From the NCBI GenBank assembly GCA_002269645.1, contig NIVC01000200.1, forward strand, positions 729,167 to 793,166: 64,000 bases of DNA. The letters run 5' to 3'. The notes below the pieces were generated by a model. That model was not told the DNA's origin and searched no databases. It worked only from the letters and a program-made list of their open reading frames with translations. Shown piece after piece: positions 1,314 to 45,540 of this stretch (position 1 is its first letter; the number at the start of each line of letters is the position of its first letter). Source of the DNA: Macrostomum lignano. Taxonomy: Eukaryota. Both the position numbers and the translations under genes were made by a program.

Positions 1314-1426
1314 CAGACAGACAGACAGACAGACACACACACAGACAGACAGACACTAAGACAGACAGACACTAAGACAGACAGACAGACACACAGACAG
1401 ACAGACACTAAGACAGACAGACACTA

Positions 1427-1463
<37 letters not shown>

Positions 1464-1466
1464 CTA

Positions 1467-1535
<69 letters not shown>

Positions 1536-1552
1536 CATACAGACAGACAGAC
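1224..1552. repeat. (CAGA)n/(TCTG)n microsatellite in intron 4 of the PP2A-A-like gene
   Basis: Directly visible; begins just after the GTGAGT donor on the minus strand. Confidence 0.97.
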
Positions 1553-1560
1553 ACACTCAC

Positions 1561-2037: not shown

Positions 2038-2082
2038 CTAACACGAGGGTAAGTAACCAGAGATAAGAGGCTGGGAGCGGAA

Positions 2083-4138: not shown

Positions 4139-4271
4139 CAGAACTATTGAGTCTTGACTAAAAAACTAATTGAGATATTTTGCCAATGCCCGCATGTGTC
4201 TTTAAAATGTCGAACAATACTTTAAGATAAATAGTTCAATCTAATAAATATTTTAATGAGGAACAACTTAC

Positions 4272-8499: not shown

Positions 8500-9012
8500 A
8501 AAATTTCTATTGTCTCTTCTGTTTCCTTTTTTCTCTCTCGTCCCGATCGTCTCTCCTCTCTCCTCTTTCTTCTCTCCTCTCTTCTCTCGTATCTTCCCTC
8601 ATCTCTCTTCTCTTTTATCTCTCTTATCTCATCTCTTGTCTCTTCTTTTCTCTCTCCTCTCCTCTTTCCTCTCTACTTTTCGTTTTCTCTCTCCTCTCCT
8701 CTCTCCTCTCTACTCTTTCGTTTTCTCTCTCCCCCTCTTCTCTTGTCTCTTCCTTCTCCTATCTATTCTTTTCTCTCTTCTCTTAACTCTCTCCTCTTTC
8801 CTCTCTCTCCTCTCTCCCCTCTTTTCTTGTCTCTTCTCTCACCTCTTTCCTCTCTCTTTCCTCTCATCTCTTTTCTTGTTTTATCTCTTCTCTCTCCCCT
8901 CGTCGCTCGTCTCTTCCCTCACCTCTCTTCTCTCTTGTCTGCTCTTTCATCTCTCCTTTCTCTTCTTTATCTTTTCTCTCTTATCTCTTCTCGTTTCTCT
9001 CTGCTCTGCTCT

Positions 9013-9068
<56 letters not shown>

Positions 9069-9815
9069 CCTCTCTACTCTCTCCCCTCTTCATTCTCCTA
9101 TTTCCTCTTCTCTCTCCCTGTCTCTCCTCTCTCCTCTAGTCTCTGTAATCTCTTCTCTCTTATCTCTCCTCTGTTCTCTCTATTCTCCCATCTCTCGTCT
9201 GTTCACCCTCATCTCTGCTCTCTCATCTGTCATCTTTACTTTCTTATACGTTCTCTCACTTATCTCCTCTGTACTCTTCTCTTTCACCTCTTCTGACTCC
9301 TCTCTTTCCTTACTCCTTTCTTCTTTTCTCTTCCCTCTTCTATACTCTCTCTCTCCTCTATTATCTTCTCTCGTCTCTCTGCACTGTCCTCTCACCTTTT
9401 TCATCTCTCATCTCTCCTTTAATCTGTCTCATCTCTACAATCTCATCTCTCCTTTCTTCCCTCTTCTTACACCCCTCTCTTATCTCTATCTCTTCTCTTC
9501 TCACTCCTCTCTCCCCCTCTTATCTCCTCTCTTCTCTATCCTTTCTACTCTCTCCTCTCCTCTTGACCCTCTGTCATCTTCTTTTTGCTCTCTCATCTCT
9601 ACTTTCTTCTCACTCTTCTCTACTCTCCTCTCATCGATCCTCTGTCTCATCTCTCCCCTGCTCTTTACCTTTACCTTTACTCCTTTACTCTTTCCTCTCC
9701 CTCCTTTCTCCCCTCCTCTCGCTTCTTCCTCCCTTCTCTGCTCTCTCCTCACCACTTGTCTCTCCTCTTATCTTCCATGTTTTCTCATATCCCCCTCTTG
9801 CCTCTCCTCTCTTCT
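8500..9815. repeat. CT-rich low-complexity polypyrimidine/polypurine tract with a central (CT)n
   Basis: Strong strand asymmetry (plus strand almost only C/T); pure (CT)n at about 9013-9063. Confidence 0.95.
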
Positions 9816-14588: not shown

Positions 14589-15198
14589 TAGGCGACATTT
14601 AGTTTGAATAGGCGAGATTTAGTTTGAATAGGCGACATTTAGTTTGAATAGGCGCCATTTAGTTTGAATAGGCGAGATTTAGTTTGAATAGGCGCCATTT
14701 AGTTTGAATAGGCGACATTTAGTTTGAATAGGCGAGATTTAGTTTGAATAGGCGACATTTCATTTGAATAGGCGCCATTTAGTTTGAATAGGCGACATTT
14801 CATTTGAATAGGCGCCATTTAGTTTGAATAGGCGACATTTCATTTGAATAGGCGCCATTTAGTTTGAATAGGCGACATTTCATTTGAATAGGCGCCATTT
14901 AGTTTGAATAGGCGAAATTTCATTTGAATAGGCGCCATTTAGTTTGAATAGGCGACATTTCATTTGAATAGGCGACATTTAGTTTGAATAGGCGACATTT
15001 CATTTGAATAGGCGCCATTTAGTTTGAATAGGCGACATTTCATTTGAATAGGCGACATTTAGTTTGAATAGGCGACATTTCATTTGAATAGGCGACATTT
15101 AGTTTGAATAGGCGACATTTCATTTGAATAGGCGCCATTTAGTTTGAATAGGCGACATTTAGTTTGAATAGGTGCCATTTATTTTAAATAGGCGCCAT
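14589..15198. repeat. 20-bp tandem minisatellite (GGCGACATTTAGTTTGAATA)n, about 30 units, with an alternating 40-bp dimer
   Basis: Directly visible; GGCGACATTTCATTTGAATA alternates with GGCGCCATTTAGTTTGAATA from about 14750. Confidence 0.96.
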
Positions 15199-16271: not shown

Positions 16272-18742
16272 GGAGATATGAATTGTCGGATATATGAAGT
16301 GTCGTAGATATGAAGTGTCGGAGATATGAAGTGTCGTAGATATGAAGTGTCGGAGATATGAAGTGTCGTAGATATGAAGTGTCGGAGATGTGAAGTGTCG
16401 GAGATATGAAGTGTCGGAGATATGGAGTGTCGGAGATATGAAGTGTCGGAGATATGAAGTGTCGGAGATATGGAGTGTCGGAGATATGAAGTGTCGGAGA
16501 TATGTAAGTGTCGGAGATGTGAAGTGTCGGAGATGTGAAGTGTCGGAGATGTGAAGTGTCGGTGATGTGAAGTGTCGGATATGTGAAGTGTCGGAGATGT
16601 GAAGTGTCGGAGATATGAAGTGTCGAATATATGAAGTGTCGGAGATGTGAAGTGTCGGATATATGAAGTGTCGGAGATGTGAAGTGTCGGAGATTTGAAG
16701 TGTCGGGGATGTGAAGTGTCGGGGATATAATGTGTCGGAGATATGAAGTGTCGGAGATGTGAAGTGTCGGAGATATGAAGTGTCAGAGATATAGAGTGTC
16801 GGGGATATAATGTGTCGGAGATATGAAGTGTCGGAGATGTGAAGTGTCGGAGATATGAAGTGTCGTAGATATGAAGTGTCGGGGATGTGAAGTGTCGGAG
16901 ATATGAAGTGTCGGGGATGTGAAGTGTCGGAGATATGAAGTGTCGGAGATATGGAGTGTCGGAGATATGAAGTGTCGGAGATATGAAGTGTCGGAGATAT
17001 GTAAGTGTCGGAGATGTGAAGTGTCGGAGATGTGAAGTGTCGTGGATATAATGTGTCGGAGATATGAAGTGTCCGAGATGTGAAGTGTCGGAGATATGTA
17101 AGTGTCGGAGATGTGAAGTGTCGGAGATATGAAGTGTCAGAGATATGGAGTGTCAGAGATATGGAGTGTCGGGGATGTGAAGTGTCGGAGATATGAAGTG
17201 TCAGAGATGTGAAGTGTCGGGGATGTGAAGTGTCGGAGATGTGAAGTGTCGGGGATATAATGTGTCGGAGATATGAAGTGTCGGAGATGTGACGTGTCGG
17301 AGATGTGAAGTGTCGGACATATGAAGTGTCAGAGATATGGAGTGTCAGAGATATGGAGTGTCGGGGATGTGAAGTGTCGGAGATATGAAGTGTCGGAGAT
17401 GTGAAGTGTCGGACATATGAAGTGTCGGAGATATGAAGTGTCGGGGATATAATGTGTCGGAGATATGAAGTGTCGGAGATGTGACGTGTCGGAGATGTGA
17501 AGTGTCGGACATATGAAGTGTCAGAGATATGGAGTGTCAGAGATATGGAGTGTCGGGGATGTGAAGTGTCGGAGATATGAAGTGTCGGAGATGTGAAGTG
17601 TCGGGGATGTGAAGTGTCGGAGATATGAAGTGTCGGGGATATAATGTGTCGGAGATATGAAGTGTCGGAGATGTGAAGTGTCGGACATATGAAGTGTCAG
17701 AGATATGAAGTGTCGGAGATGTGAAGTGTCGGACATATGAAGCGTCAGAGATATGAAGTGTCGGATATGTGAAGTGTCGGAGATGTGAAGTGTCGGAGAT
17801 ATGTAAGTGTCGGAGATGTGAAGTGTCGGAGATATGAAGTGTCGGAGATGTGAAGTGTCGGAGATATGAAGTGTCGGAGATGTGAAGTGTCGGACATATG
17901 AAGTGTCAGAGATATGGAGTGTCGGGGATGTGAAGTGTCGGCCATATGAAGTGTCAGAGATATGGAGTGTCAGAGATATGGAGTGTCGGGGATGTGAAGT
18001 GTCGGAGATATGAAGTGTCGGAGATTTGAAGTGTCGGGGATGTGAAGTGTCGGAGATATGAAGTGTCGGGGATATAATGTGTCGGAGATATGAAGTGTCG
18101 GAGATGTGAAGTGTCGGACATATGAAGTGTCAGAGATATGAAGTGTCGGATATGTGAAGTGTCGGAGATGTGAAGTGTCGGAGATATGTAAGTGTCGGAG
18201 ATGTGAAGTGTCGGAGATATGAAGTGTCGGAGATATGAAGTGTCGGAGATATGAAGTGTCGGAGAGTGTGAAGTGTCGGAGATATGAAGTGTCAGAGATA
18301 TGGAGTGTGTGAAGTGTCGGAGATATGAAGTGTCGGAGATGTGAGAGTGTCGGAGATATGATGTCGGAAGTGTCGGAGAGATATGAAGTGTCGGAGATAT
18401 GAAGTGTCGGATATGTGTCGGAGATATGAAGTGTCGGAAGTGTCGAATATGAAGTGTCAGAGATATGAAGTGTCGGATATGTGAAGTGTCGGAGATGTGA
18501 AGTGTCGGAGATATGAAGTGTCGTAGATATGATGTGTCGGGGATGTGAAGTGTCGGAGATATGAAGTGTCGGGGATGTGAAGTGTCGGAGATATGAAGTG
18601 TCGGAGATATGGAGTGTCGGAGATATGAAGTGTCGGAGATATGAAGTGTCGGAGATATGGAGTGTCGGAGATGTGAAGTGTCGGAGATGTGCAGTGTTGG
18701 AGATGTGAAGTGTCGGAGATGTGAAGTGTCGGAGATGTGAAG
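16272..18742. repeat. 16-bp tandem minisatellite (GTGTCGGAGATATGAA)n, about 150 units
   Basis: Directly visible; variants GATGTGAA, GATATGGA, GGGATATAAT; degrades near 18280-18460. Confidence 0.97.
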
Positions 18743-19618
18743 TTGTGCAGCGGCCCTGACTGTCTGATCGTCAGGCAGTTACACCCTCTGTGCCTTAGGG
18801 GCTGGCCATCATGGGTATGAATCGCACCTGGGCCAATTCTCATGCGCACACAAGCCTAAATGAATGTGGCAGCGCACGATATTGAACCGGTGGTCGTGAC
18901 GCGGAGAGTCGGATGCGTTTACCGCTGAGATGCTCAGCCCCTCGGGCCAGTATCCAAGGCAGAAGTATCAGATTGCATTCAGGCAGCTCTAAAAGCCCGT
19001 AACCCCTTGTCTCCCTGTCTCTGGTGCTTCTATATAGCCAATTCATCTCATTTTTACCGTTACTCGCAGACCAACTCGAACAAAATCTGCATTTCAGTTT
19101 AGCGTGTCTGCCTGTGCGTGCGTGCATTTGTGCTGGCTTCCAGCTCTTCTCCACTGCGGTAGAAAAGTGAGCAGTCTGCACAGTTTAAAACTTAAAATAC
19201 AAGACTTCGGCGATAAATGTGCATTAGACGGCTATTCTGCAAGACTGCGAGAGTATGAATGCAATTCGAATGGGGGGGGGTTTACAAGCGAGTTCGTTCG
19301 GGGTGGCTGGCACAGCCCCACCCAAGCAAACTTCGAGCACATAGCGCGCTATGCCGGCTGGAGTGTCTGGCAAACTCTATTAAACCTCGAGCCTAAACAA
19401 GCAACCTGCGTTGTTTGGTCCGTAAGGGCAGAACGGTTTTTTCTCTCCTGCGGCGTTTTCGACCTGCCATTCAGACCTTTTTTTCTGTTCTATCCAAAAC
19501 TAATATATAAGCGTAAGTTTTATGCTCAGATAGTGGCTCAACGCTAAATTCTAGGGACTCATAAGTGTTGTTTGAGTCGGATTAGTTTAATTATAAAACC
19601 GAAACTTCAAACTTCATC

Positions 19619-20041
19619 ATGACTGCCGCTTCCAGTCCGTTGCTGCTGAGGCGATCCTTGTCGCTCGCACCGCAGCCTCCGCCGCATCATCAGCATTTAC
19701 ACATTCACCAGCGCATTGGTAAGCCGCGACAGCCACAGCGACAGAATAGTAACACTAATAGTAACAGCGGTGGTAGTACGAACGGCAGTAATATGAGCAG
19801 AGAGCAGTTGGCTCAACGGCTGAGACACAACTGGGCTGCAAGAGACACGCAGGTTCAGCAACAGCAACAGCAGCAAACTGCGGCAGCTGTGATGGCCGCA
19901 GCAGCAGTTAACCACGACGCTCTGTTTTCACCGACAGCTGTTGGCAAGTTGGCAGCTGCCGCGGCCGCCGCCGCGGTGACTGGAAATGGTGGTGGCAGCG
20001 GTGCGACGGACATGGATCTGACTAACCTAGGCTGGCTACAA
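19619..20041 (+). CDS. foxJ1: FoxJ1-like forkhead transcription factor, exon 1 of 3 (model 19619-20041, 20321-20947, 24927-26069; 730 aa)
   Basis: ATG at 19619, donor CAA|GTAAGC at 20041/20042 (phase 0). Ends in DLTNLGWLQ, the LTxLxWLQ N-terminal motif typical of FoxJ/FoxN proteins. Confidence 0.8.
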
Positions 20042-20320
20042 GTAAGCACTGAGTTTTGATTGGCATGGATTTTTTTTTTCTGCTAAACGTAAACGTAAGC
20101 GCGCTAATATAGCAATGCTAAGCTAACAGTCTGCGTAGAAAGAAGAGTTAGAAAAGATAGGACCCTTTGACAAACAAGCGTGGAGGGAGAAGCGTTTACT
20201 GCTAGAGCTGTTTATTCAAGATAAAGACAGCTTAGATCTTAAAGTACGAATTGATGCTTTAGCCGACGGGGGTGTGTGGTGCATAATCCTGCAACTAGCG
20301 TCTCGTTATCAACCTCGCAG

Positions 20321-20683
20321 AACATGAACCTGATGAAGCTGACTCCGCCAACTCCGCCAGCTTCGCCGCAGCCTCCATCGGCGGCCGCAATGGCGGCAGC
20401 GGCTGCAGCAGCGGACGCAGCTGCCGCTGCATCTGCAGCCGCATCGGCGGTGGCGGTGCTTGGCTCCGAGGTGATTCTAGTCGAGCAAACGGTAGCTGAC
20501 TCTCTGCAGTTCTATACACAGCAGCAGCATCAGCAGAGCTACCTGTCAGCTTCCGGTAATTCGAGGCCCAACCTCCATCGAGCAATCTCTTCGCCAAATT
20601 TTCAACCTTCAACAAACGGTGGGTTGCCGTATGCAAATCAGTCGCTATTGACGTCGCAGCATCATCATAGTCAGCAGCAGCAT

Positions 20684-20718
<35 letters not shown>

Positions 20719-20947
20719 ACATCAACAATCGTTGATTCAACTGCCACCATCGGCGCCTCCAATCCCACCGAAGCCAGATCCGGAATATGCGGCCGATCCG
20801 ACCCTCCGACCGCCCTATTCTTTTTCTACTCTAATCTACATGGCGTTGAAAAGTCTGAAGAAATCGAAAATGACTCTGCAGGAAATCTGCGACTGGATTG
20901 GGGCGCATTTTGCATTCTATGGCAGTTCGGCCGATCAAAGCTGGCAG
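20321..20947 (+). CDS. foxJ1: FoxJ1-like forkhead transcription factor, exon 2 (poly-A/poly-Q region and N-half of the forkhead domain)
   Basis: Acceptor CGCAG|AAC, donor CAG|GTGAGG, both phase 0. DPTLRPPYSFSTLIYMALKSLKKSKMTLQEICDWI...SWQ matches FoxJ1 [35 protein letters not shown]...TWQ. Confidence 0.9.
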
Positions 20948-21121
20948 GTGAGGAGTTATAGTCGCAGTGATTAAGTACGCGCTAGCAATCAATTAAAAAG
21001 GTGCTCTTGCTGCTGAAAATAAGAGAGCATTGTACAGGTATAAAGGTATTAGTTGTGATTCACGTGGTACCTGAGATATTTCTGTTTTCTCAGAAATACC
21101 ATTCGATGTACAAGGAATGTA

Positions 21122-22152
21122 CACCTTTTTACTTTCTATTTTGAAAAATCTGCACTCAATATTGCATGGTATCGCTTGTAGAAATGTTCAACCTATTTTG
21201 ACAAACTCAAATGCAATAATGACGAATTTCAACCGAAAATGACAAACCTTTATTAACAATTTGCAAGCAACTTTGACAATCGGTTACAAAACAGTGCCTC
21301 TGTCTCGCCGTCTATGGAACAAAGCTTGCATATGTGCACCCATTTTTGACAGATTGCATCCAAAAGTGACAGATTGCATTAGCACACATTGAAAAAAACC
21401 TTAGTTAGCCGTATAAAATACACTAGCTAATCAGTTTGCCAAGTCGTATTACGTTCTGTATGGCAGGTCCGCGATTCAACGCCAAAGTTAGCGACGACGA
21501 CAGGAGGCGGTTAACCCAGTAATTAACCGGTTAACTACTGCCCATGAGAATGGTGACGACTTTTTTACCTGGCTCGTGCCTTGGGGATCAAAAGAACCAC
21601 TGCAGCGTATGCCGTTGGTAGAATTGGACGAGTAGAAAAGCTGCCAAATGGAGATCAGCCGTTCAGATCAGAGTTAATCAGGCCATGCTGGCGGTTTCAT
21701 GAAGAACTCGATTTAGTCAAATCCCAATATTGCTCTGGCCAGGACCTGGGATCAGCGAACACTCGCCGGGGCGATTGGCCAGGGCAAACTCTCACTGGAT
21801 CAGCCAGGGCGCGTAGGCCCCGCTAGGGTTGGGATCGGATCTTTAATTGTCACTTTTGGATGCACTCTGTCAAAAATGGATGCACATATGCAAGCTTCGT
21901 TCCATAGACGGCGAGACAAAGGCACTGTTTTGTAACCGAGTGTCAAAACTGAATGCACACTGTCAAAATTGCTTGCAAATTGTTAATAAAGATTGAAGTT
22001 TGTCATTTTCGGTTGAAATTCGTCATTATTGCATTTGAGTTTGTCAAAATAGGTTGAACATTTCTACAAGCGATACCATGCAGACTGTCAAAATTGAATG
22101 CAAACATGTCAATATTGAGTGCAGATTTTTCAGAAAAGAAAGTAAAAAGGTG
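21122..22152. mobile_element. Foldback/MITE-like element with long inverted arms (21122-21371 and 21848-22152), TA-flanked
   Basis: The right arm is the reverse complement of the left arm plus small insertions. Termini are TA|CACCTTTTTACTTTC and GAAAGTAAAAAGGTG|TA. The arms contain repeated TGTCAAAA words. Confidence 0.8.
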
Positions 22153-22164
22153 TAGCACGGTGTC

Positions 22165-22945
22165 TGAGGAATCTGATGCGGTGGCTAAGGGATCTGATAG
22201 GGATCTGATGCGGTGTCTGAGGGATCTGATAGGGATCTGATGCGGTGTCTGAGGGATCTGATAGGGATCTGATGCGGTGTCTGAGGGATCTGATAGGGAT
22301 CTGATGCGGTGTCTGAGGGATCTGATAGGGATCTGATGCGGTGTCTGAGGGATCTGATGCGGTGTCAGAGGGATCTGATGCGGTGTCAGAGGGATCTGAT
22401 AGGGATCTGATGCGGTGTCTGAGGGATCTGATGCGGTGTCTGAGGGATCTGATAGGGATCTGATGCGGTGTCTGAAGGATCTGATGCGGCGGCTAAGGGA
22501 TCTGATGCGGTGTCTGAGGGATCTGATGCAGTGTCAGAGGGATCTGATGCGGTGTCTGAGGGATCTGATAGGGATCTGATGCGGTGTCTGAAGGATCTGA
22601 TGCGGTGTCTGAAGGATCTGATGCGGTGGCTAAGGGATCTGATGCGGTGTCTGAGGGATCTGATGCGGTGTCTGAGGGATCTGATGCGGTGTCAGAGGGA
22701 TCTGATAGGGATCTGATGCGGTGTCTGAAGGATCTGATGCGGTGTCTGAAGGATCTGATGCGGCGGCTAAGGAATCTGATGCGGTGTCTGAAGGATCTGA
22801 TGCGGTGTCAGAGGGATCTAATGCGGTGTCAGAGGGATCTGATGCGGTGTCTGAGGGATCTGATGCGGTGTCAGAGGGATCTGATGCGGTGTCAGAGGGA
22901 TCTAATGCGGTGTCAGAGGGATCTGATGCGGTGTCAGAGGGATCT
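22165..22945. repeat. 21-bp minisatellite (GAGGGATCTGATGCGGTGTCT)n with interspersed 11-bp AGGGATCTGAT subunits
   Basis: Directly visible, in FoxJ1-like intron 2. Confidence 0.96.
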
Positions 22946-23838
22946 GTTTGGGCTAGTTTCAGAATTTTTTCTTACAGACACTGTAGACAGTTGATCGAAA
23001 GTGGCAAAATACGGTATTTATTCAATTGGGACCTGTTTTCGAAATGTTCCAACAATTATTCAAAGTAAACACTACATTTTATCGTGGTTTGACCAACTCT
23101 GATCTGTGGCATACAGCCAGTTAGTTAACGCCCAACCAACTATGAATTTAAGTTAATTGAAGACTCAATTAAGCTTCGCCGTTTAACTGAATCTTATCTT
23201 ATCTATTGTGCTGAGCAGTTTTAAGAAGAATAAACCTAAACTTTACTCTTTTATCTAATCTGTCTGTCTGACAGCAGTGTCTTCTAATCCTCTTGTGAGT
23301 AGGAATTTTTTATAGTTAGCCAATTTCATAGAATGACATGCAGAAGTTTTTCGCATCCTGACAATGCACTTTTAGGGAGACTATATCCTCATATTTTAAT
23401 ACTAGTTGGCTCTATGAAGTCATTATATATTCTCTCTGAAGCAGCAAAATTCTCTTCACAATAGCAGAGAGCTGTGTTAGTAGGCTGGCCGTAAACTGGA
23501 CAATGGGTCGTGTACTATATAAAGTTTTTAACCATGGCGAGTACGCCATTGGGGAGCTTTCTTCCCACGGTTGGGACGAGATGGGAGCTGAGTGAGACAT
23601 CGCCTGGAGTAAGAGATGATGAAGAGAACGCGGGAACTGTGCAAACACTGTTGTAGCGCAAAGGAAACTTTGCAGAAAAAAATCAAATAGCAATTCTGCT
23701 TTTTACTTGATTTATTAACGATTTAAAACTGGCGAAGATGCATCAGTACGTGTTTTATGGCCCATGTACCTGAGGAAAGATGGGTAGAGCTTTGGAGACA
23801 TTTTTCAATGCCCATATTTGGAGATGTGTTATCGGGCG

Positions 23839-24809
23839 CAGGGGCGTCGCCATATGGACTTTATGGTGGGGGGGCAAAGCCAAGAATTCTACATGTACAG
23901 TGTACATGTACATTATTTTCAGAATCAGTGTTATCAGCGCTCATTTGGGCTCCGCAGGCTCTCATTTTGGTGCCACAGGCACTGATTTTAGCACCGCAGG
24001 CTCTCATTTTGGTGCCACAGGCACTCATTTTGGTGCCACAGGCACTCATTTTGGCGCCGCAGGCTCTCATTTTGGTGCCACAGGCACTGATTTTAGCGCC
24101 GCAGGCACTCATTTTGGCGCCGCAGGCACTCATTTTGGCGCCGCAGGCACTCATTTTGGCGCCGCAGGCACTCATTTTGGCGCCACAGGCACTCATTTTC
24201 TATGGCGCCGCAGGCACTGATTTTGGTGCCACAGGCACTCATTTTCTATGGCGCCGCAGGCACTGATGTTGGTGCCACAGGCACTCATTTTCTATGGCGC
24301 CGCAGGCACTGATTTTGGTGCCACAGGCACTCATTTTCTATGGCGCCGCAGGCACTGATGTTGGTGCCACAGGCACTCATTTTCTATGGCGCCGCAGGCA
24401 CTGATTTTGGTGCCACAGGCACTCATTTTCTATGGCGCCGCAGGCACTGATTTTGGTGCCACAGGCACTCATTTTCTATGGCGCCGCAGGCACTCATTTT
24501 GGCGCCGCAGGCACTGATTTTGGCGCCGCAGGCACTCCTTTTGGTGCCATATGCCCTCATTTTAGCGCCCCAGGCACTCATTTTAGCGCCCCAGGCACTC
24601 CTTTTGGCGCCGCAGGCACTCATTTTGGCGCCGCAGGTACTCATTTTGGCGCCGCAGGTACTATATTTTGCCACCCTGAAGCAAAATTTATTTCCATAAC
24701 GGGTCACAAAGTTGGGTGGGTGGGGTGGGCAAAGCATTGGCATGTCCCCCATAGTTTTTACTGGGGGGACATGTTCCCCTTGTCCCCACCCCCGGTGGCG
24801 ACGCCCCTT
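23839..24809. mobile_element. hAT-type MITE (971 bp) carrying an internal 21-bp minisatellite
   Basis: TIR CAGGGGCGTCGCCA (23839-52) / TGGCGACGCCCCTT (24796-809), 13/14 match. 8-bp TSD ATCGGGCG / ATCGGGCA, 7/8 match. No coding capacity. Confidence 0.8.
23940..24665. repeat. 21-bp minisatellite (GGCACTCATTTTGGCGCCGCA)n with a central 46-bp (21+25) higher-order dimer
   Basis: Directly visible inside the MITE. Confidence 0.95.
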
Positions 24810-24926
24810 ATCGGGCAACACAACGCATACTTATCCCAATAACCCAACTTGTTGGCCAGCTAGTAGCTTGTAAAGCTCGTAGTTACCGACTCTAAAATTA
24901 TCTCCAACAACCCCCGTCTCTCCCAG

Positions 24927-26069
24927 AGCGCCGTCCGCTACAACCTGACCCTCAATCGTTGCTTCCAACGCGTACCTCGACGCAAAGACGAAGCGGCCAG
25001 CCGTGGTGGCAGCGGAAGCGCCGGCAGTTGCGGCGGCTACTGGCGCCTGAATCCAGACTACACTGGCCAGTTTGAGCTGGCTAATGCGCAGCAGCAGCAG
25101 TACCAGCATCATCAGGTGTCGCCTTCATCTCACGGATTGTTAAAGCGTCAACGCTCAACGCAGCCTCAGCATCATCATCAGCTGCCGCCACCGCCATTGC
25201 ATCTTTTCGATTCGCCTCTTGTAAACGGCGGCGCCGGTTTCCATGGCACCAACAATCGACGGCATCACAGTCACGATGAACAAACTGACGAGTCGCCGTT
25301 GCTAAGCGACCACCCGGCGGCGGCAAAGCTGAGGCGAATCCAGGATGAGAGCAGATTTGGCAACGGAAGAAGCGTCGATGCGGACAGCGGCGGCAGACAC
25401 GACTCCAGCGGTCACTGGGTGTCCATGGCTCTAAGCGGCGGCCCTGTGGAGACTCGAGTCCGCGACCCGACCCTGACGGCTCAGCCGGCTTCAACAGCGG
25501 CAGCAGCTGCCGCAGCCTCTGCCGCCGCCGCCGCAGCCACGGCCGTCTCTGTAGCGGCGACAACGGCAGCCGCAGCGGCGGCCTCCGTCGCGGTTTCCAC
25601 TCTGACAGCATCGTCAGTTTCACTGACGCCAGGCAAAGACTCTACAGCGGCCACCGCCGTGTCGAACGTTGGCGCCGACTCTCTCGTAGCTCTACCAGGC
25701 GGCATCATCGGCGTCGGAGATCTCGACGAAGACGAGCGCTGGCTGTTTGAACCGGATGACGACGCTGTACTGGCTGACCCGACGCCGGCGCTTGACATGT
25801 CGAATCCCGACAGCTTGCTGGATTTGACGCTGCACGGCATGGCCCTGCCGCCGCCCAGCTGGTGGCTCACCAACGGGTCCAACCACGGTGGCATGGGTGA
25901 TCAGCATCAGCAGCATCAGAATCCTGCCAGTTTGAATGGCTCTTTGAACGGCCTCATGATCGGCCTGCCGAGCACTCCGTCCCCCATTATGCAGCACGAG
26001 CAGGACGAATGGATCGACGAGAATTTTGTCGGGGCTGTTGGTTCGCTTGACAACTTGCTGGGTATTTAA
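24927..26069 (+). CDS. foxJ1: FoxJ1-like forkhead transcription factor, exon 3 (C-half of the forkhead domain and a long C-terminal region, stop TAA)
   Basis: Acceptor CCCCCGTCTCTCCCAG|AGC, in frame with ORF 25116-26069. SAVRYNLTLNRCFQRVPRRKDE...GGYWRLNPDY matches FoxJ1 [35 protein letters not shown]. Confidence 0.9.
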   Translation, partial: SAVRYNLTLNRCFQRVPRRKDEAASRGGSGSAGSCGGYWRLNPDYTGQFELANAQQQQYQHHQVSPSSHGLLKRQRSTQPQHHHQLPPPPLHLFDSPLVNGGAGFHGTNNRRHHSHDEQTDESPLLSDHPAAAKLRRIQDESRFGNGRSVDADSGGRHDSSGHWVSMALSGGPVETRVRDPTLTAQPASTAAAAAAASAAAAAATAVSVAATTAAAAAASVAVSTLTASSVSLTPGKDSTAATAVSNVGADSLVALPGGIIGVGDLDEDERWLFEPDDDAVLADPTPALDMSNPDSLLDLTLHGMALPPPSWWLTNGSNHGGMGDQHQQHQNPASLNGSLNGLMIGLPSTPSPIMQHEQDEWIDENFVGAVGSLDNLLGI

Positions 26070-29771: not shown

Positions 29772-30727
29772 TCCCTGTCTCTTGGTCGGCGTCCCTGTCT
29801 CTTGGTCGGCCCGGCCCTGTCCCTGGTCGGCGCGGCCCTGACTCTTGGTCGGCGCGGCCCTGTCCCTGGTCGGCGCGGCCCTGACTCTTGGTCGGCGCGG
29901 CCCCGTCCCTGGTCGGCGCGGCCCTGACTCTTGGTCGGCGCGGCCCTGTCCCTGGTCGGCGCGGCCCTGACTCTTGGTCGGCGCGGCCCCGTCCCTGGTC
30001 GGCGCGGCCCTGACTCTTGGTCGGCGTGGCCCTGTCCCTGGTCGGCGCGGTCCTGTCCCTGGTCGGCGCGACCCTGTCCCTGGTCGGCGCGGCCCTGACT
30101 CTTGGTCGGCGCGGCCCCGTCCCTGGTCGGCGCGGCCCTGACACTTGATCGGCGCGGCCCTGACACTTGGTCGGCGCGGCCCTGACACTTGGTCGGCGCG
30201 GCCCTGACACTTGGTCGGCGCGGTCCTGTCCCTGGTCGGCGCGGTCCTGTCCCTGGTCGGCGCGGTCCTGTCCCTGGTCGGCACAATCCTGTCCCTGGTC
30301 GGCACAATCCTGTCCCTGGTCGGCACAATCCTGTCCCTGGTCGGCACAATCCTGTCCCTGGTCGGCACAATCCTGTCCCTGGTCGGCACAATCCTGTCCC
30401 TGGTCGGCGCGGCCCTGACTCTTTGTCGGTAACCCCTGTGTCCTGGTCGGCAACCCCTGTGTCCTGGTCGGCAACCCCTGTGTCCTGGTCGGCAACCCCT
30501 GTGTCCTGGTCGGCAACCCCTGTGTCCTGGTCGGCAACCCCTGTCTCCTGGTCGGCAACCTCTGTCTCCTGGTCGGCAATCCCTGTCTCCTGGTCGGCAA
30601 CCCCTGTCTCCTGGTCGGCAACCTCTGTCTCCTGGTCGGCAATCCCTGTCTCCTGGTCGGCAACCTCTGTCTCCTGGTCGGCAATCCCTGTGTCCTGGTC
30701 GGCGCGGCCCTGACTCTTGGTCGGCGC
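29772..30727. repeat. Multi-block GC-rich minisatellite of related 20-21-bp units (core TGGTCGGC)
   Basis: Successive homogeneous blocks, e.g. CTCTTGGTCGGCGCGGCCCTGA, ACAATCCTGTCCCTGGTCGGC, AACCCCTGTGTCCTGGTCGGC. Confidence 0.96.
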
Positions 30728-31382
30728 CCCTACCCCCCCCCTCTTTGAGCCGGTGAATGTCATGTCCAACAGTCATATGCAATAGGTTGAGCTTCCTTTA
30801 TTCTTCGAGCTTACGAGTACATGTACATGATGGTTTTTAGGTTTTGGGTCAAAATTCCACAAAAAACTTTTTAGGCACAATTTCGTGAAAATCGTGCACT
30901 CGCGAAGACCGACTAATCTCTCGCTGAAATATGTTTTAGCATTAGTGTATGATATTTTTTCCGAGTTTGTTTCCTAAATTTGTCTACAAGCAGTATGCTA
31001 CATTGCAGTAGTGTTTTCTTCTAAACAGTTGAATTTTTGCAACGATTTTTTTGGCATTATATTTCAATGAATTTCGTCATAGATCAATACGGGCAAAGAA
31101 AATCCGTCTACAGACGTTCTTTGGTTATAGCAGCTGTTTGCTTAAGTTCGTATTGTTTTTGCTGCTAAACGACAGCAACGATCGTTCCGTTTTATTTTGT
31201 TATACGTGCACATGGACGACTAAGCCATACTGCACTATAGTAGCAGAGTGTTGCAATATTTGCAGAGACGTGTACATGTATGCTCAAAAAAGATGGTGCA
31301 GTAAATACCGTAGTACTTGAAAGTATACCACAAACTAGCACGCAAAAAAATTTTTCCAAGAAATCTCACTCGTATTTTTTTT

Positions 31383-31838
31383 CGCTTTCGGAAGTCTGCT
31401 TCCGTTTTTCGGGGGTTTGCTTTCGGCTTTCGGGGGTTTGCTTTCGGCTTTCGGGGGTTTGCTTCCGGCTTTCGGGGGTTAATTTGCTTTCGGCTTTCGG
31501 GGGTTTGCTTTCGGCTTTCGGTGGTTTGCTTTCGGCTTTCGGTGGTTTGCCTTCGGCTTTCGGTGGTTTGCCTTCGGCTTTCGGGGGTTTGCTTTCGGCT
31601 TTCGGTGGTTTGCCTTCGGCTTTCGGTGGTTTGCTTTCGGCTTTCGGTGGTTTGCCTTCGGCCTTCGGTGGTTTGCCTTTGGCTTTCGGGGGTTTGCTTT
31701 CGGCTTTCGGTGGTTTGCTTTCGGCTTTCGCGGTGGTTTGCTTTCGGCTTTCGGTGGTTTTTTTGCCTTCGGCTTTTGGGGGTTTGCTTTCGGCTTTCGG
31801 GGTTTTGCTTTCGGCTTTCGGTGGTTTGCTTTTGGCTT
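31383..31838. repeat. Degenerate 21-bp minisatellite (GCTTTCGGCTTTCGGTGGTTT)n
   Basis: Directly visible. Confidence 0.94.
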
Positions 31839-32393
31839 TCGAGCGCTTGCTTGTTATTATCGGGTCTTTCGGGAACCTGCGCTTAATCAAGTCATCAGCG
31901 CTAGTAGCCACTGATATGCAGCAAACAGTCAGCCCGACGACAAGCAGAAACAGTGCTATCCTGATATACACTTAATTTGCTAATTTAGGCTTGAAACAGA
32001 CAAATAGAAACCTGAGAATCTCGAAGGTATACGGCCGTAGATCAGCTGCAAACGGTTGTGAGTTACGAAGTTGTGAAATGGAACCGAGCTATTTAGTTGA
32101 TATAGTTCTGAAATAGTCCATTGCGCAGAGCTGCCACGTGGAAGTTAGGGAAAAACGTAACTTTAATGCAAATTTCTTGCAATCCTAGGTGATTCTCTGC
32201 CTTCGAGCAAAAGAAATGTATGAAAAAATAGCAGAAAAAATGAAAGTAGGGTATTCTGTAAATTTTTCAAACAGCATTAACTCAGCATACATTTTCGTGG
32301 CTAAAATTTTTAAAATATTGAATTCGAAGTTTAGGGATTTCGACTTGGCAGTTCCATACAATGTTATAAATAAAAATAAATTGTCTCTCTACA

Positions 32394-37069: not shown

Positions 37070-37229
37070 CTAAAAAGGTGAAATTAAAAGTTAAAAGTTA
37101 AAACAAAGAGAACTTTGATATATTAGTTATAAAATTTATAACTTACAGATGTAGCAAATGTAATTTATAATTTAATTTTTTTGTTACATGTACATGTACA
37201 TTGAATTATGAAATAGAGGAAATACTCAC

Positions 37230-38740
37230 GGCTCAGTTTCGATAGATACATCGGAGAGGTCCTCGTCTATGGCTGTATCGCCATCAACAGTAGGAAGAGA
37301 AGTTTCACGCAAAATTTCATTCATTGCTTTTACGAGCTCAGCCTTAGCAAAGTTGCGCTGCTCTTCATCGAAAAAATCTAGCCGGAAGCGTGGGTCTAAC
37401 ATCGTAGCAACAATGTGGTGGTGACTCTTTTTTTCGTCAGAGAAGCGTTGAGTCAACCCTTTCACCAGGTCGTCTCGAAGGTACGTGATGCCAAAGCAGT
37501 CTACCTGCTGCAGATGCTCCAGCGACACTTTCACCATCGGCAAGATACACGAGATGCTGGCAGTTTCCCTGCTGACTTCTAGCGTAAAAACCTCAAAAAT
37601 CTCAAGAAGTTTGACAGCTTTCTTTGAAACATCTGACTCATTGTCCGTCAGGATTTCAATTGGTCGGTGTCTGGTGCGATAGACACTAAACGCTTCCTCT
37701 TGCTCGTTGATTCGGCGTAACATGGCTAGTGTTGAATTCCAGCGTGTGTCTACATCTTGCACGAGGCTGTGTGTTGGTAGCTTCAGCTGGAGCTGCAGTG
37801 TTTTGAGGTTTGCTTGAGCGGTTACAGAGTGGTGGAAGTGGCCAACAATGCTCCGTGCTTTGTCAAGTATTGTCTTCAGTCCTCGATGACCGGAGATGGA
37901 ATCCTTAACAACAAGGTTCAGCTTGTGGGCAGCACAATGGGCAGATGGTACTTTCAGAAGTTCTCCTGCAAGCTTCATGTTGCTGGCCCCATCACGCAGG
38001 AGGAGGCTGACTTGCTCTAAGCCAATGCCCCACTCACCAAGGGTTGTCGAAAAAACGGCCGAGATGTTAAGCCCAGTATGGGCATCAGTGAATGGCTTTA
38101 CGCACAGTAAAAGCTGCTTACGCTCAAAATCTGGCGTGATAGAATGGATTGTGAAGGACATGAGTGCCAACTGGCCGTCACTCCACAAGTCACACGTGAA
38201 ACCGAAATCTCGCAGTCTGTCTATTTCGTCCTGGACCTGCAATTTAATTTCTTCATAGAGAGTCTCTAGCTTGTCATGATAAAATCGAGTGCTCTTCAAT
38301 CGATATTGCGGACATGCTTCTTTCAACAGATCGCGAAAGCCTTCACCTTCTACCACAGAGAATGGCTGTGAATCCAACACAATAAAGCGGAGAATTTTTC
38401 GATCAATTGCAACCGAACGAGGGTGCGAATCCGACCATTCTTGAGCATTTGCTTGAGCAAACATTGTGCTCAACTTCTGCTGCTTCAATGGTTGTGGTCC
38501 ATCTTTACATTTTGGCTTTGCACGATCTGCCTCAGTGTTTAGGAGCTCTTTGAATTGAATTGGATGGCAGGATTCTATGTGTCTTCGCATGCTGCCTGTT
38601 GATCCTGTGTTTCGTAGAACCTCCTTCTTACAAGCTAGGCAAGCAGCAGAATTCTCTTTTCCTTCAACGTCTTTAAAGTACAACCACACAGCACTGCCTC
38701 TTCCTCGAGGTTGCTGGGTTGGCTTATCAACAGAGGCCAT
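37230..38740 (-). CDS. hAT transposase exon 1 (BED zinc finger + DDE core; Ac/ZBED-type; 641 aa after splicing)
   Basis: SAVWLYF, CLAC...RRHIESCH (BED finger), FTCDLW (D1), RDGASNM (D2), HCAAHKL (CxxH), TRWNST. Donor CC|GTGAGT at 37230/37229 (phase 2), 160-nt intron. Confidence 0.95.
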
Positions 38741-44303: not shown

Positions 44304-44913
44304 GTCAAAGATCGGCGACCTCAGCAACCGCAACCGGCACATCACCAGCCGGGACAACAACAGCTACCGCGGCTTCGGTCACGCCAGGTTCGCCCAACGC
44401 CTGATGCTGGAGAGTAGCGAAAATCTCATTGTCCGAGCTCACGTTGAATTCTCCATTGAAGAGACCGTGTCAGCCGATCCGTCCACCAATTCCGAGCGTC
44501 AGTGTCACAGCTGTCAGCAGTGCCAGAATCCGCGGCTCCATCTCTGCCCATCAGTCCGGCCGTGCAGTCCAACAGCAGCTGACGGTCCGGACGCCGATCA
44601 GGTGTACTATCAAATGGAGGCCTGCGACTTTAGCGGCCTACTTGTTGATGGTTCATTCTCCGATCTGAGGATACTGGCCCCAGGCGATACCGTGATTAAA
44701 GTGCACAAGTGCGTACTGTGCGTCCGCAGCGAGGTGTTCGCCGCTATGATCTCGAATTCTTGTAAAGAATCAACTGAATCAGAGATTGTCATTGATAGTT
44801 TCTCGGTGGAAACTATTCGTCTGTTCTTTGTGTACTTGTACGGCGGTAGGATTAGCAGGACCGAGCTGCAGGACCGAGCTCTCGAACTGATGAAGATGGC
44901 CCACCTGTATCAG
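44304..44913 (+). CDS. MATH-BTB protein exon 2 (end of MATH, linker, BTB/POZ domain)
   Basis: Acceptor (CT)nCAG|G. SDLRIL, IKVHKCVLCVRSEVFAAM, ESTESEIVIDSFSVETIRLFFVYLYGG, LMKMAHLYQ are canonical BTB motifs. Donor CAG|GTCAGT. Confidence 0.9.
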
Positions 44914-44994
44914 GTCAGTGTACAGTGTGGTATGTTGATTTTAAATAGTCCCCTTTCTGCCAATTACGAACCCTGTCAATCACCTGGCAACCAG

Positions 44995-45540
44995 ACACTC
45001 CTAGTTTGTCACTCAGACACCTCTAGTCTGTCACTCAGACACCTCTAGTCTGTCACTCAGACACCTCTAGTCTGTCACTCAGACACCTCTAGTCTGTCAC
45101 TCAGACACCCCTAATCTGTCGCTCAGACACCCCTAATCTGTCACTCAGACACCTCTAGTCTGTCACTCAGACACCCCTAATCTGTCACTTAAACACCCCC
45201 TAATCTGTCACTCAGACACCCCTAATCTGTCGCTCAGACACCCCTAATCTGTCACTCAGACACCTCTAGTCTGTCACTCAGACACCCCTAATCTGTCACT
45301 CAGACACCCCTAGTCTGTCACTCAGACACCTCTAGTCTGTCACTCAGACACCTCTAGTCTGTCACTCAGACACCTCTAGTCTGTCACTCAGACACCCCTA
45401 ATCTGTCACTCAGACACCTCTAGTCTGTCACCCCTAAACTGTTATTTAAATACCCCTAACCTGTCACTTAAACACCCCTAATCTGTCACTTAGACAACCT
45501 TAATCTGTCACTCAGACACCCCTAATCTGTCTGTCACTTT
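44995..45540. repeat. 22-bp minisatellite (CTAGTCTGTCACTCAGACACCT)n in intron 2 of the MATH-BTB gene
   Basis: Directly visible; each unit contains a GTCTG-N5-CAGAC mini-hairpin. Confidence 0.95.

Follow-up and report, generated by a model that had tools for sequence, protein, structure and literature searches.

Forkhead proteins are the textbook example of a frozen DNA-reading helix, and canonical FoxJ1 is the master regulator of motile ciliogenesis. Direct hydrogen bonds to the bases are usually made by N54c and H58c only, R57c is able to take over base recognition at variant sites, and the backbone is contacted by K3c, S7c, R57c, S61c, and K68c (PMC8501956). The helix-3 Asn has been termed "ultra-conserved" (PMC12143875). 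Known changes in forkhead specificity, such as the FHL motif of FoxN, spare these contact residues. FoxN1/N4 and other alternative-specificity forkheads (FHL motif GACGC) depart from the RYAAAYA preference, as the gene described here putatively does, but they reach the switch through DNA shape, the H2-H3 loop, and the wings with unchanged helix-3 contacts (PMC8501956, PMC12143875), whereas in Macrostomum the contacts themselves are replaced. Two predicted teleost proteins also have an altered helix 3: the FoxJ1-B-like protein of Gouania willdenowi reads WQKAIRWNL, with both His and Asn replaced, and the FoxJ1-A-like protein of Parambassis ranga reads WQNSIRYNL, with the same His-to-Tyr change as in Macrostomum. 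Both are recent single-species duplicates with otherwise canonical domains and not an ancient clade spanning several classes.

Flatworm FoxJ1 branches are long, and one duplication of the gene has been assigned to the rhabditophoran ancestor (bioRxiv 10.1101/2025.01.09.632129). Ventral cilia depend on the canonical planarian gene, Smed-FoxJ1-4, which also switches on ciliary genes of zebrafish (PMC3493443). The other lineage, group B, contains Smed-foxJ1-2/-5 and the parasite genes Sman_J1_2, Emul_J1_2, Tsol_J1_2, and Gsa_J1_2 (Pascual-Carreras et al., 2021). The planarian group-B genes are expressed in ciliated dorsal-stripe, epidermal, neuronal, and protonephridial cells, and RNAi of foxJ1-2 causes no gliding defect in planarians (PMC3493443, PMC7859237). 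foxJ1-5 acts downstream of soxB1-2 (PMC12424676). This paralog group (Smed-foxJ1-2/-5, parasite "J1_2") is thus already catalogued, but the published Fox surveys consulted make no mention of a helix-3 change in these genes. The same surveys score FoxJ1 as missing in M. lignano, and the gene reported here is not on their lists. Neither SAVRY nor Macrostomum FoxJ1 sequences occur in the survey supplements, which give accessions only (PQ406774 and PQ406785 for M. cliftonense, PQ406799 and PQ406825 for M. hystrix).

The present gene lies on the + strand of a 64-kb stretch of DNA, here called the window, from the macrostomid Macrostomum lignano, which is not a planarian. Joining of three exons gives an uninterrupted forkhead protein of 730 aa, and both introns are GT-AG. 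The features are as follows.

19619..20041, + strand: coding exon 1, aa 1-141
19808-19834, + strand: LAQRLRHNW motif, in exon 1
20018-20041, + strand: LTNLGWLQ motif, aa 134-141, exactly at the end of exon 1
20042..20320, + strand: intron 1, 279 bp, GT...AG, phase 0
20321..20947, + strand: coding exon 2, aa 142-350
20948..24926, + strand: intron 2, 3979 bp, GT...AG, phase 0
24927..26069, + strand: coding exon 3, aa 351-730 and the stop codon
24927..24956, + strand: rewritten part of the recognition helix, S351 A352 V353 R354 Y355 N L T L N
24990..25043, + strand: expanded wing 1, EAASRGGSGSAGSCGGYW, running as E372-AASRGGSGSAGSCGG-Y-W389
25818-25865, + strand: LDLTLHG..SWW motif, in exon 3
26007-26066, + strand: C-terminal tail EWIDENFVGAVGSLDNLLGI, aa 711-730

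The start codon in exon 1 is the first ATG past an in-frame stop. Exon 2 carries the NMNLMKL motif, tracts rich in Ala and Gln, and the forkhead domain as far as W349-Q350; this first half opens with R304-PPYSF (20807), includes helices 1 and 2, and is matched at 20807-20947 in a tblastn search with a canonical FoxJ1 domain. Intron 2, in which there are two arrays of a 21-bp minisatellite (22199-22946 and 23940-24670), interrupts helix 3 directly after W-Q. The remainder of helix 3, strand 2, wing 1, strand 3, and the C-terminal motifs are in exon 3. Exon 2 ends with ...AGC TGG CAG, followed by gtgagg, at 20947, and at 24927 exon 3 begins after ctcccag with AGC GCC GTC CGC TAC AAC CTG ACC CTC AAT CGT TGC TTC.

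The preliminary description of this DNA had called the gene FoxJ1-like, with an intact LTNLGWLQ motif in an open reading frame of 730 aa, and both statements hold. The FoxJ1 motifs are present outside the domain at both termini: LAQRLRHNW and LTNLGWLQ-NMNLMKL in the N-terminal part, with DMDLTNLGWLQ at aa 131-141, and LDLTLHG...SWW and a W-I-D...LDNLLGI tail, common to the FoxJ1 of other animals, in the C-terminal part. In the set of database hits, the same N- and C-terminal motifs are found in FoxJ1 proteins of many phyla. A neighbour-joining tree of 42 domains (88 columns, rooted on FoxN2/3; a distance method, with long branches) also places the protein inside FoxJ1 and apart from FoxJ2/3 and FoxN2/3.

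The recognition helix reads WQSAVRYNLTLNRCF. Its rewritten stretch stands where canonical proteins have N-S-I/V-R-H-N-L-S-L-N, and the codons at the 20947/24927 junction bear out the earlier reading of WQ-SAVRY in place of WQ-NSIRH. Each of the four changes (AGC, GCC, GTC, and TAC) is one nucleotide away from a canonical codon. The pattern N-(S/A)-I/V-R-H survives only in its Arg and its hydrophobic residue, and the base-contacting Asn and His are Ser and Tyr here. Changes at the positions that contact the backbone are conservative: K3c is changed to R, S7c is kept, S61c is changed to T, and K68c to R. Compared with canonical FoxJ1 (human FOXJ1, Smed-FoxJ1-4, Sman_J1_1/Emul_J1_1), the extra-domain motifs and the fold are common to both, and the domain identity is ~44%; against WQNS[IV] the Macrostomum protein has N to S, S to A, and H to Y, a longer wing 1, and no wing Lys. 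The FoxJ1 signature of helix 3 and wing 1 is absent, and the protein has WQSAVRYNLTLNRCFQRVPRRKDEAASRGGSGSAGSCGGYW instead. Motif regexes and tblastn with the canonical FoxJ1 domain detected no second helix-3 exon on the two strands of the whole 64 kb. This rules out an alternative exon of the NSIRH type, whether in intron 2 or in the rest of the window, and agrees with the preliminary description, in which none was seen in intron 2.

About 10 extra Gly/Ser-rich residues had been noted in the wing, and the alignment gives 9 additional columns relative to the orthologs of flukes and tapeworms and 10 relative to canonical FoxJ1. The insertion columns are present in Macrostomum only. An imperfect run of GGC/AGC triplets encodes the insert, which in this resembles the poly-Q and poly-A tracts of other parts of the protein, and the prediction for it is disorder (AlphaFold2 pLDDT ~52, model residues 81-90). 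The wing Lys described as lost is indeed gone, but the insert holds an Arg. The wing-2 basic patch is also missing from its usual position, ~17 residues beyond which there is a KRQR. The insert is a Macrostomum-specific expansion of a trinucleotide repeat in a loop and would probably have little effect on specificity.

The domain is recognized as a forkhead by several methods. The Pfam Forkhead model PF00250 matches aa 304-399 (E=6.3e-25, 87.6 bits against a cut-off of 27), and phmmer against the PDB matches FOXL2, FOXN3, FOXC2, and FOXA2 at ~1e-16. The AlphaFold2 model has a mean pLDDT of 79.7 and the element order H1-S1-H2-H4-H3-S2-W1-S3, with an alpha-helix at aa 348-359 (block pLDDT ~90). 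Its best Foldseek matches are the DNA complexes of FOXC2, FOXA2, and FOXN1 (target-normalised TM 0.80-0.90). A normal winged-helix fold is therefore predicted. By this modelled fold and by its sequence the protein is a member of the forkhead family, but one devoid of the canonical DNA-reading residues.

The preliminary description had regarded the gene as a paralog. This holds if an ancient paralog lineage of flatworms is meant and not a peculiarity private to Macrostomum, as flukes, tapeworms, monogeneans, and planarian foxJ1-2/-5 have likewise lost the His, and mostly the Asn. On sequence grounds the gene belongs to the long-branched group B, together with Smed-foxJ1-2/-5 and the parasite "J1_2" genes. 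It has in common with them the N-terminal motifs LA+KLRQNW and DDSLTNLxWLQNxN, the C-terminal motif W-V/I-D...L-E/D-x-LLG, and a set of derived residues (LIYMA, SLKK, IC-W, T at S61c, and R at K64c/K68c). The [KR]IS.[KR]F...WQN motif that parasite group-B proteins carry past the domain is absent from Macrostomum, which alone has the Gly/Ser insert in wing 1 and which keeps G-G-Y-W versus G-D-L-W. Helix 3 of the divergent members reads as follows.

Schistosoma: WQDIIR[QK][NH]L
Trichobilharzia: WQDVIRQHL
Calicophoron: WQGALRQDL
Paragonimus: WQETLRQNL
Opisthorchis and Clonorchis: WKEALRQNL
Mesocestoides, Taenia, and Echinococcus: WKLALRQTL
Protopolystoma: WQASFRQNL
Gyrodactylus: WQLDLRQCL
Smed-FoxJ1-2: WQNSVRNLL
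Smed-FoxJ1-5: WKTGIKNHL

In every divergent member the helix-3 His is replaced, by Y, Q, K, N, or L. The Asn is replaced as well in most of them, while the Arg, the fold, and the backbone-contact positions are retained. The orthologs share the loss of His, and mostly of Asn, but not the S/Y pair of Macrostomum: S..Y in Macrostomum stands against D/E/G/L/A..Q/K in the parasites and N/T..N in the planarians. The position of the Asn is hypervariable, with S, D, E, G, L, A, or T in different members of the clade. Such a position resembles a lost contact more than a new specific one.

A score gap in an exhaustive profile search was set aside as evidence of orthology. The gap came in part from the inclusion of a Schistosoma sequence in the profile, and with the window domain alone as query, divergent and canonical FoxJ1 proteins score alike (96 vs 94 bits). 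Because the gap vanished, trees were built instead, and since the similarity scores are alike, orthology to the parasite clade rests on the neighbour-joining tree and on a few shared residues. In these trees (79-88 columns, neighbour-joining, long branches) the window gene and the divergent neodermatan clade group with 69% bootstrap, or 56% when the helix-3 columns are removed, and long-branch attraction in this placement is possible. Without helix 3, the nearest relatives are divergent flatworm FoxJ1 proteins in 195 of 200 replicates. The gene structure is also shared, as the neodermatan members of group B have the same three exons. The intron after ...WLQ is at the same position in the Opisthorchis, Clonorchis, Taenia, and Schistosoma orthologs, the intron after W-[QK] is conserved in five neodermatan loci, and both positions were found in 6/6 loci examined. 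Canonical, group-A flatworm models also split helix 3 after WQ (the exon of Sman_J1_1 starts at NSVRH), and both intron positions may be shared by FoxJ1 genes at large.

In related lineages, purifying selection acts on the divergent domain. Between O. viverrini and C. sinensis, dN/dS is 0.02 in the domain (dS 0.43) and 0.17 elsewhere; between S. mekongi and S. intercalatum the values are 0.34 and 0.67, respectively. Helix 3 is identical in Opisthorchis and Clonorchis, and again in Taenia, Echinococcus, and Mesocestoides.

The reading that we favor, with a probability of roughly 0.55, is that the gene is an intact group-B FoxJ1 whose product would still bind DNA through helix 3 with an altered or relaxed base preference. 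The protein would most likely act as a functional factor of ciliated cells with altered or partner-dependent DNA recognition. The analysis leans towards retained binding with changed recognition because the gene is conserved and under selection and has retained the fold, the Arg, and the positions that touch the backbone. Contacts would be made by the helix Arg and by the hydrogen-bond-capable residue at the His position, and the choice of targets would be governed to a greater extent by partner factors and the remaining FoxJ1 motifs. Its role would probably be confined to a subset of ciliated cell types and not be that of a general switch for ciliogenesis. Within group B, several independent losses of the base-contact residues, all later than the duplication, are most likely, because some free-living members still read NS[IV]RH and pairs such as S/Y, D/Q, and N/N are each one nucleotide step from N/H. 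Letr_J1, Mosp_J1_3, and Bose_J1_2, which have the canonical helix, have been grouped with the divergent genes (support 100/1/97; PMC7859237). A single ancestral loss of N and H for all of group B is less likely, as polyclad, proseriate, and Bothrioplana members keep NS[IV]RH and as a single step leads from His to each of Y, Q, N, and L but not between all of these.

An alternative, which we regard as rather unlikely, is that the protein has kept its FoxJ1 motifs but no longer reads bases, binding DNA non-specifically or not at all. Such a modulator would titrate FoxJ1 partners or be tethered by them (e.g., RFX-type factors) as a competitor or co-factor. The two residues responsible for direct hydrogen bonds to bases are replaced (PMC8501956), the Asn position is free to vary across the clade, the wing-1 Lys and the wing-2 basic patch are out of their usual places, and the FoxJ1 motifs outside the domain are well conserved. 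Planarian foxJ1-2 RNAi gives no cilia phenotype (PMC3493443). The hypervariable Asn and the absence of the wing-2 patch from its usual place would also fit weak or absent sequence-specific binding. However, conservation extends to the Arg of helix 3, the W-[QK] start, the hydrophobic face, and the positions in contact with the backbone, helix 3 is almost frozen within lineages, and the domain dN/dS of 0.02 is below that of the rest of the protein. The domain is the most constrained part, and therefore a loss of all DNA contact is not expected.

That the protein is an essentially normal FoxJ1, in which Ser and Tyr still hydrogen-bond to or pack on the same bases of a RYAAAYA-like site, is judged quite improbable. 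It could then be the regular ciliogenesis regulator of Macrostomum, or one of them. Helix-3 contacts of FOX proteins do re-arrange on variant sites (PMC8501956), and both paralogs of M. cliftonense and M. hystrix match the FoxJ1 of other phyla weakly (1e-20 to 1e-26, one 0.16; preprint supplement); from these weak scores Macrostomum may have no more canonical copy. S and Y are one nucleotide step from N and H and are both hydrogen-bond-capable, and a fish FoxJ1a-like protein has WQNSIRYNL. Ser, however, is much shorter than Asn and, on established structural grounds, is unable to form the bidentate contact to adenine. The Asn is moreover described as ultra-conserved and base-contacting in all structures (PMC8501956, PMC12143875), and the relatives carry non-equivalent residues at the two positions (D, E, G, L and Q, K), an argument that this lineage has no need of the canonical contacts.

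The stronger proposition that Macrostomum is without any FoxJ1 of the canonical NSIRH type is likewise doubtful. If true, a heavily ciliated worm would build its motile cilia under a FoxJ1 devoid of the base-contacting Asn and His. In that case, either FoxJ1 specificity and the cis-elements of the whole ciliary gene set would have evolved together or partners such as RFX would have taken over control. In wider terms, the group-B FoxJ1 genes of flatworms would be a natural experiment, run repeatedly, in which forkhead recognition is rewired via the contact residues themselves. Group B is an anciently duplicated FoxJ1 lineage in which the His, and mostly the Asn, were replaced by residues that differ between flatworm classes, with the domain still under purifying selection. 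It provides a natural set of variants for studying what a forkhead domain can do without its canonical base contacts, and it bears on the divergence of a duplicated master regulator of ciliogenesis. The gene also fills a gap in the Fox catalogue of M. lignano, where FoxJ1 had been scored absent, and mis-annotated parasite orthologs are flagged. RNAi and transgenesis exist for M. lignano, so a direct test is possible.

A second copy of the gene bears on the integrity of the locus. The protein is 98% identical to M. lignano A0A1I8GW87 and PAA62899.1, and the locus that encodes the latter (L006, contig NIVC01001891.1) is collinear, with the same three exons, GT-AG at the matching junctions, and an intact ORF of 733 aa. 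There are 0 nucleotide differences across the 345 nt coding the domain. M. lignano thus holds at least two near-identical copies. The 20947/24927 junction and its codons, on which the preliminary description depended, are repeated in the second locus. An artefact of assembly or splicing is excluded, because the second copy has identical domain DNA and splice sites and the intron positions are conserved in flukes and tapeworms. An assembly error, which the preliminary description had named as a danger to its claim, is excluded by L006; so is a different exon 3, given the same junctions in L006 and no other helix-3 exon in the window. A silent gene under relaxed selection, which it had also considered, is unlikely. 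An explanation by artefact or decay (assembly or annotation error, wrong exon 3, or a pseudogene under relaxed selection) could invoke the 6 non-synonymous and 2 synonymous changes between the two copies in exon 1 and the low-complexity repeats throughout the protein, but it is already contradicted, and very improbable, in view of identical domain DNA and junctions from two independent loci and assemblies, intron positions kept between flatworm classes, the single helix-3 exon of the window, intact ORFs of 730 and 733 aa, and orthologs kept in Macrostomorpha and all three neodermatan classes with a strongly purified domain. The overall dN/dS between the two copies is ~0.33-0.37, a value resting on 18 substitutions only. 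The low-complexity repeats in which the protein is rich include poly-Q and poly-A tracts.

The window gene of Macrostomum lignano has not been catalogued before and is best described as belonging to a group of flatworm FoxJ1 paralogs that is already known. FoxJ1 has been scored absent from M. lignano in a published Fox survey (bioRxiv 10.1101/2025.01.09.632129), and the group itself is already in the literature as long-branched FoxJ1 copies (bioRxiv 10.1101/2025.01.09.632129; PMC7859237). The recognition helix is discussed in neither Fox survey; the word "helix" is absent from the preprint and occurs only as "winged helix" in PMC7859237, and SAVRY was not found in the supplements of the two. 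Loss of the base-contact residues is clade-wide and probably repeated, and no description of it was found in the flatworm Fox surveys. The gene occupies 19.6-26.1 kb of the window on the plus strand and consists of three exons:

19619-20041, plus strand, exon 1, from the first ATG past an in-frame stop to CTA CAA/gtaagc
20321-20947, plus strand, exon 2, from cgcag/AAC ATG to TGG CAG/gtgagg
24927-26069, plus strand, exon 3, from ctcccag/AGC GCC GTC CGC TAC to a terminal TAA

The spliced product of 730 aa has zero internal stops and exon 1 terminates with the LTNLGWLQ motif, so that the splice model bears out the intact reading frame and motif reported in the preliminary description. The Forkhead Pfam model matches aa 304-399 (E=6e-25), and the nearest solved structures by sequence are FOXL2, FOXN3, FOXC2 and FOXA2. 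Helix 3 reads W349-Q350 followed by S-A-V-R-Y-N-L-T-L-N-R-C-F, with the intron falling precisely after W-Q, and wing 1 reads K-D-E-A-A-S-R-G-G-S-G-S-A-G-S-C-G-G-Y-W; both agree with the earlier reading in every detail readable from sequence. Among the aligned forkhead domains the wing-1 insert is present in Macrostomum only. It is encoded by an imperfect GGC/AGC run resembling many Ala, Gln and Ser tracts elsewhere in the protein, and is regarded as a repeat expansion within a tolerant loop. Six-frame motif regexes and tblastn with the canonical FoxJ1 domain detected no second helix-3-like exon in the whole 64 kb, in agreement with the earlier statement that no alternative NSIRH exon was seen in the 4-kb intron.

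The protein is 98% identical to M. lignano A0A1I8GW87 and PAA62899.1, which assigns the window to this macrostomid and not to a planarian. The locus encoding the latter protein (L006, contig NIVC01001891.1) and the window run collinear for 20 kb or more; L006 has an intact 733-aa ORF with GT-AG at the same four junctions. Identity between the two loci is 94-97% in exon 1, intron 1 and exon 2 and 99.7-99.9% in exon 3, the upstream flank and those portions of intron 2 that are unique, with 0 nucleotide differences in the 345 nt coding for the forkhead domain. The patchwork suggests that homeologous copies in the recently duplicated genome have undergone gene conversion or recombination. When a His/Gln repeat is left aside, the copies differ by 9 synonymous and 9 non-synonymous changes (dN/dS ~0.33, from counts too small to carry weight). 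Because two independent loci carry the same S...Y codons and the same junctions, assembly error is ruled out.

Relatives sharing the protein's general architecture were gathered by exhaustive profile search and cluster look-ups, with Echinococcus and Gyrodactylus taken from the PMC7859237 supplement. They include flukes (Schistosoma spp., Trichobilharzia, Calicophoron, Paragonimus, Opisthorchis, Clonorchis), tapeworms (Mesocestoides, Taenia, Echinococcus), monogeneans (Protopolystoma, Gyrodactylus) and the planarian Smed-FoxJ1-2 (P0111) and Smed-FoxJ1-5 (P0085). Common to the group are the N-terminal motifs LA(R/K)KLRQNW and DDSLTNLxWLQNxN, the signature (R/K)CFQ(R/K)VPRRK(D/E)E following helix 3, a DWW stretch and a C-terminal W-(V/I)-D...LNLEELD.ILGL tail. 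Since FoxJ1 from other phyla likewise has the LTxLxWLQ and C-terminal motifs, these are evidence for membership of the FoxJ1 family, not of a particular subgroup. Three coding exons with introns right after ...WLQ and W-(Q/K) occur in O. viverrini, C. sinensis, T. asiatica, S. mekongi and S. intercalatum, and these five neodermatan loci give the 20947/24927 junction independent support. Several gene models of the hit set have annotation problems (P0072, P0161, P0163/P0164), the S. mansoni ortholog being annotated as "rhoptry protein, putative". The S. curassoni model is cut short at the W-Q intron, where the S. bovis gene, too, is broken into two models.

In forkhead domains, direct base hydrogen bonds normally come from N54c and H58c only (consensus numbering of Dai et al.), and base recognition on variant sites can pass to R57c (PMC8501956); the Asn has been termed "ultra-conserved" (PMC12143875). 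At His58c, Macrostomum has Y, most neodermatans have Q, some schistosomes K, both planarian genes N, and P0110, an unplaced flatworm-like protein, has L. Asn54c is replaced by S, D, E, G, L, A or T and is retained only in Smed-FoxJ1-2 and P0110. Loss of the His is shared by all divergent members, but the S/Y pair itself is not, the parasites having D/E/G/L/A and Q/K and the planarians N/T and N in its place. Arg57c is constant with the sole exception of K in Smed-FoxJ1-5, and the W-(Q/K) start and a hydrophobic residue at 56c are retained. The backbone-contact positions of Macrostomum are kept or conservatively changed (K3c to R, S7c retained, S61c to T, K68c to R). Helix 3 is identical among Opisthorchis viverrini, O. 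felineus and Clonorchis, among Taenia, Echinococcus and Mesocestoides, and among four or five Schistosoma species; the new helix is nearly frozen within lineages. P0110 (573 aa) is group-B-like, resembling the divergent flatworm paralogs, and has the flatworm FoxJ1 N- and C-terminal motifs; its helix 3 reads WQNAMRLCL (Asn retained, His to Leu), followed by CFHRVHKRKGEHDGGWNDFW.

With the window domain alone as query, divergent fluke proteins scored 96 bits and canonical FoxJ1 94 bits, and raw similarity therefore cannot decide the lineage. The score gap in the profile search was rejected as evidence of orthology, being partly an artefact of the Schistosoma sequence in the profile. In neighbour-joining analysis of 42 forkhead domains (root FoxN2/3, 200 bootstraps), a distance method subject to possible long-branch attraction, 69% of bootstraps made the window gene the sister of the neodermatan divergent clade, and 51% joined Smed-FoxJ1-2/-5 to them. 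After removal of the nine helix-3 columns, support for the window plus neodermatan clade was 56%, and divergent flatworm FoxJ1s were nearest to the window gene in 195/200 replicates. Derived residues outside helix 3 (LIYMA, SLKK, IC-W, Arg at K64c and K68c) and the gene structure point the same way, toward membership of the divergent flatworm FoxJ1 lineage. This is consistent with the single FoxJ1 duplication in the rhabditophoran ancestor, with long branches, proposed in the preprint (bioRxiv 10.1101/2025.01.09.632129), and with the published clade of parasite J1_2, planarian J1_2/J1_5 and some free-living flatworm genes (support 100/1/97; PMC7859237 supplement). The preliminary description had proposed a paralog with altered specificity or a non-DNA-binding competitor; tree, motifs and introns support FoxJ1 paralog membership, and the proposal as a whole in part.

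Polyclad, proseriate and Bothrioplana members of the published clade retain WQNS(I/V)RH (PMC7859237 supplement). Comparison of Macrostomum AGC-GCC-GTC-CGC-TAC with canonical AAC-TCC-ATC-CGC-CAC places each changed codon one nucleotide away; a single step leads from His to any of Y, Q, N and L, but two are needed between Y and Q. The most economical interpretation is a relaxation of constraint on both base-contact residues in the paralog lineage, after which they would have been replaced independently in Macrostomum, planarians and the neodermatan stem. Two FoxJ1 paralogs have been reported in M. cliftonense and M. hystrix, with BLAST scores against FoxJ1 of other phyla of only 1e-20 to 1e-26 (one 0.16), no better than those of other Fox families in the same table (bioRxiv 10.1101/2025.01.09.632129 supplement). 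Macrostomum may therefore lack a canonical FoxJ1; that, or recognition of a new motif by the domain, would make the finding weightier.

For the pair O. viverrini and C. sinensis, the 98 domain codons give a dN/dS of 0.02 (dS 0.43) and the rest of the protein 0.17; for S. mekongi and S. intercalatum the two values are 0.34 and 0.67. Where divergence suffices for measurement, no other part of the protein is as constrained as the divergent domain. An AlphaFold2 model of aa 295-431 (8-sequence alignment) has a mean pLDDT of 79.7 and the order H1, S1, H2, H4, H3, S2, wing 1, S3. Helix 3 is of high confidence and the wing insert has a pLDDT of ~52, suggesting disorder. Foldseek matched the model to FOXC2, FOXA2 and FOXN1 DNA complexes (TM 0.8-0.9).

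We favour, with a probability of roughly 0.55, a functional FoxJ1-family transcription factor with altered or relaxed recognition and a role in ciliated-cell subtypes. Helix 3 would still dock in the major groove, given the conserved fold, Arg and backbone contacts and the strong selection on the domain. Base contacts by the canonical Asn and His would be given up, so that an altered or relaxed sequence preference is expected. The retained Arg would contribute to target choice, as would whatever contact the residue at the His position can make and partners recruited via the conserved N- and C-terminal motifs. Planarian group members are expressed in ciliated dorsal-stripe, epidermal, neuronal and protonephridial cells and are dispensable for gliding (PMC3493443, PMC7859237), and within the lineage of ciliated sensory and epidermal cells foxJ1-5 lies downstream of soxB1-2 (PMC12424676); this suggests the role in ciliated-cell subtypes. 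A non-binding or tethered modulator, to which the hypervariable Asn position and displaced basic patches would be suited, is unlikely, as it is hard to square with a domain under stronger constraint than any other region. Somewhat more doubtful is near-normal RYAAAYA binding through S/Y, conceivable for Macrostomum specifically, of which the residues in the relatives give no hint. An artefact or pseudogene is highly improbable, being contradicted by the second locus, conserved introns, intact ORFs and selection.

Changed helices were also observed in FoxJ1-like predictions from teleosts, namely WQKAIRWNL in Gouania willdenowi (P0040/P0041/P0173) and WQNSIRYNL in Parambassis ranga (P0082); the latter has the His-to-Tyr change of Macrostomum, but the rest of its domain is canonical. 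Predictions from Schistocerca spp. (P0013, P0019, P0174, P0018, P0125) and Procambarus clarkii (P0097) contain 2-12 tandem forkhead domains with mostly degenerate recognition helices (e.g., WQKALSTIL, WLHAISCCL, WKNSVRCCL). We know of no description of multi-forkhead proteins of this kind. The rest of the window contains the following features:

1424-2044, minus strand, HEAT-repeat exon at the left end of the window
37226-38740, minus strand, intact 504-aa ORF with a BED zinc finger (E=1e-8) and a Hermes-type hAT transposase DNA-binding domain
44404-45048, plus strand, BTB/POZ exon of a neighbouring gene (E=2e-15)
47043-47801, plus strand, exon of a neighbouring gene for an amiloride-sensitive DEG/ENaC channel, N-terminal half (E=9e-29)
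49211-49753, plus strand, probable further DEG/ENaC exon
49778-64000, 14.2-kb tandem array of a 23-bp unit, AGCAGTAGCTTTGGCGCTCTATT (~625 copies, 94% match), extending to the window end
1-695, 3410-4139, 8550-9627, 14589-15198, 16272-18743, 22199-22946, 23940-24670, 29773-30727, 31380-31852 and 44992-45531, minisatellites, mostly of 16-30-bp units

The 504-aa ORF is probably a hAT transposon or a domesticated copy. The 23-bp array accounts for the flat composition profile from 50 kb on. The minisatellites, among them a 2.5-kb array (16-bp unit) immediately 5' of the fox gene and a pair within its intron 2, give rise to long spurious ORFs (e.g., GSDAVSE and PQALIL repeats).
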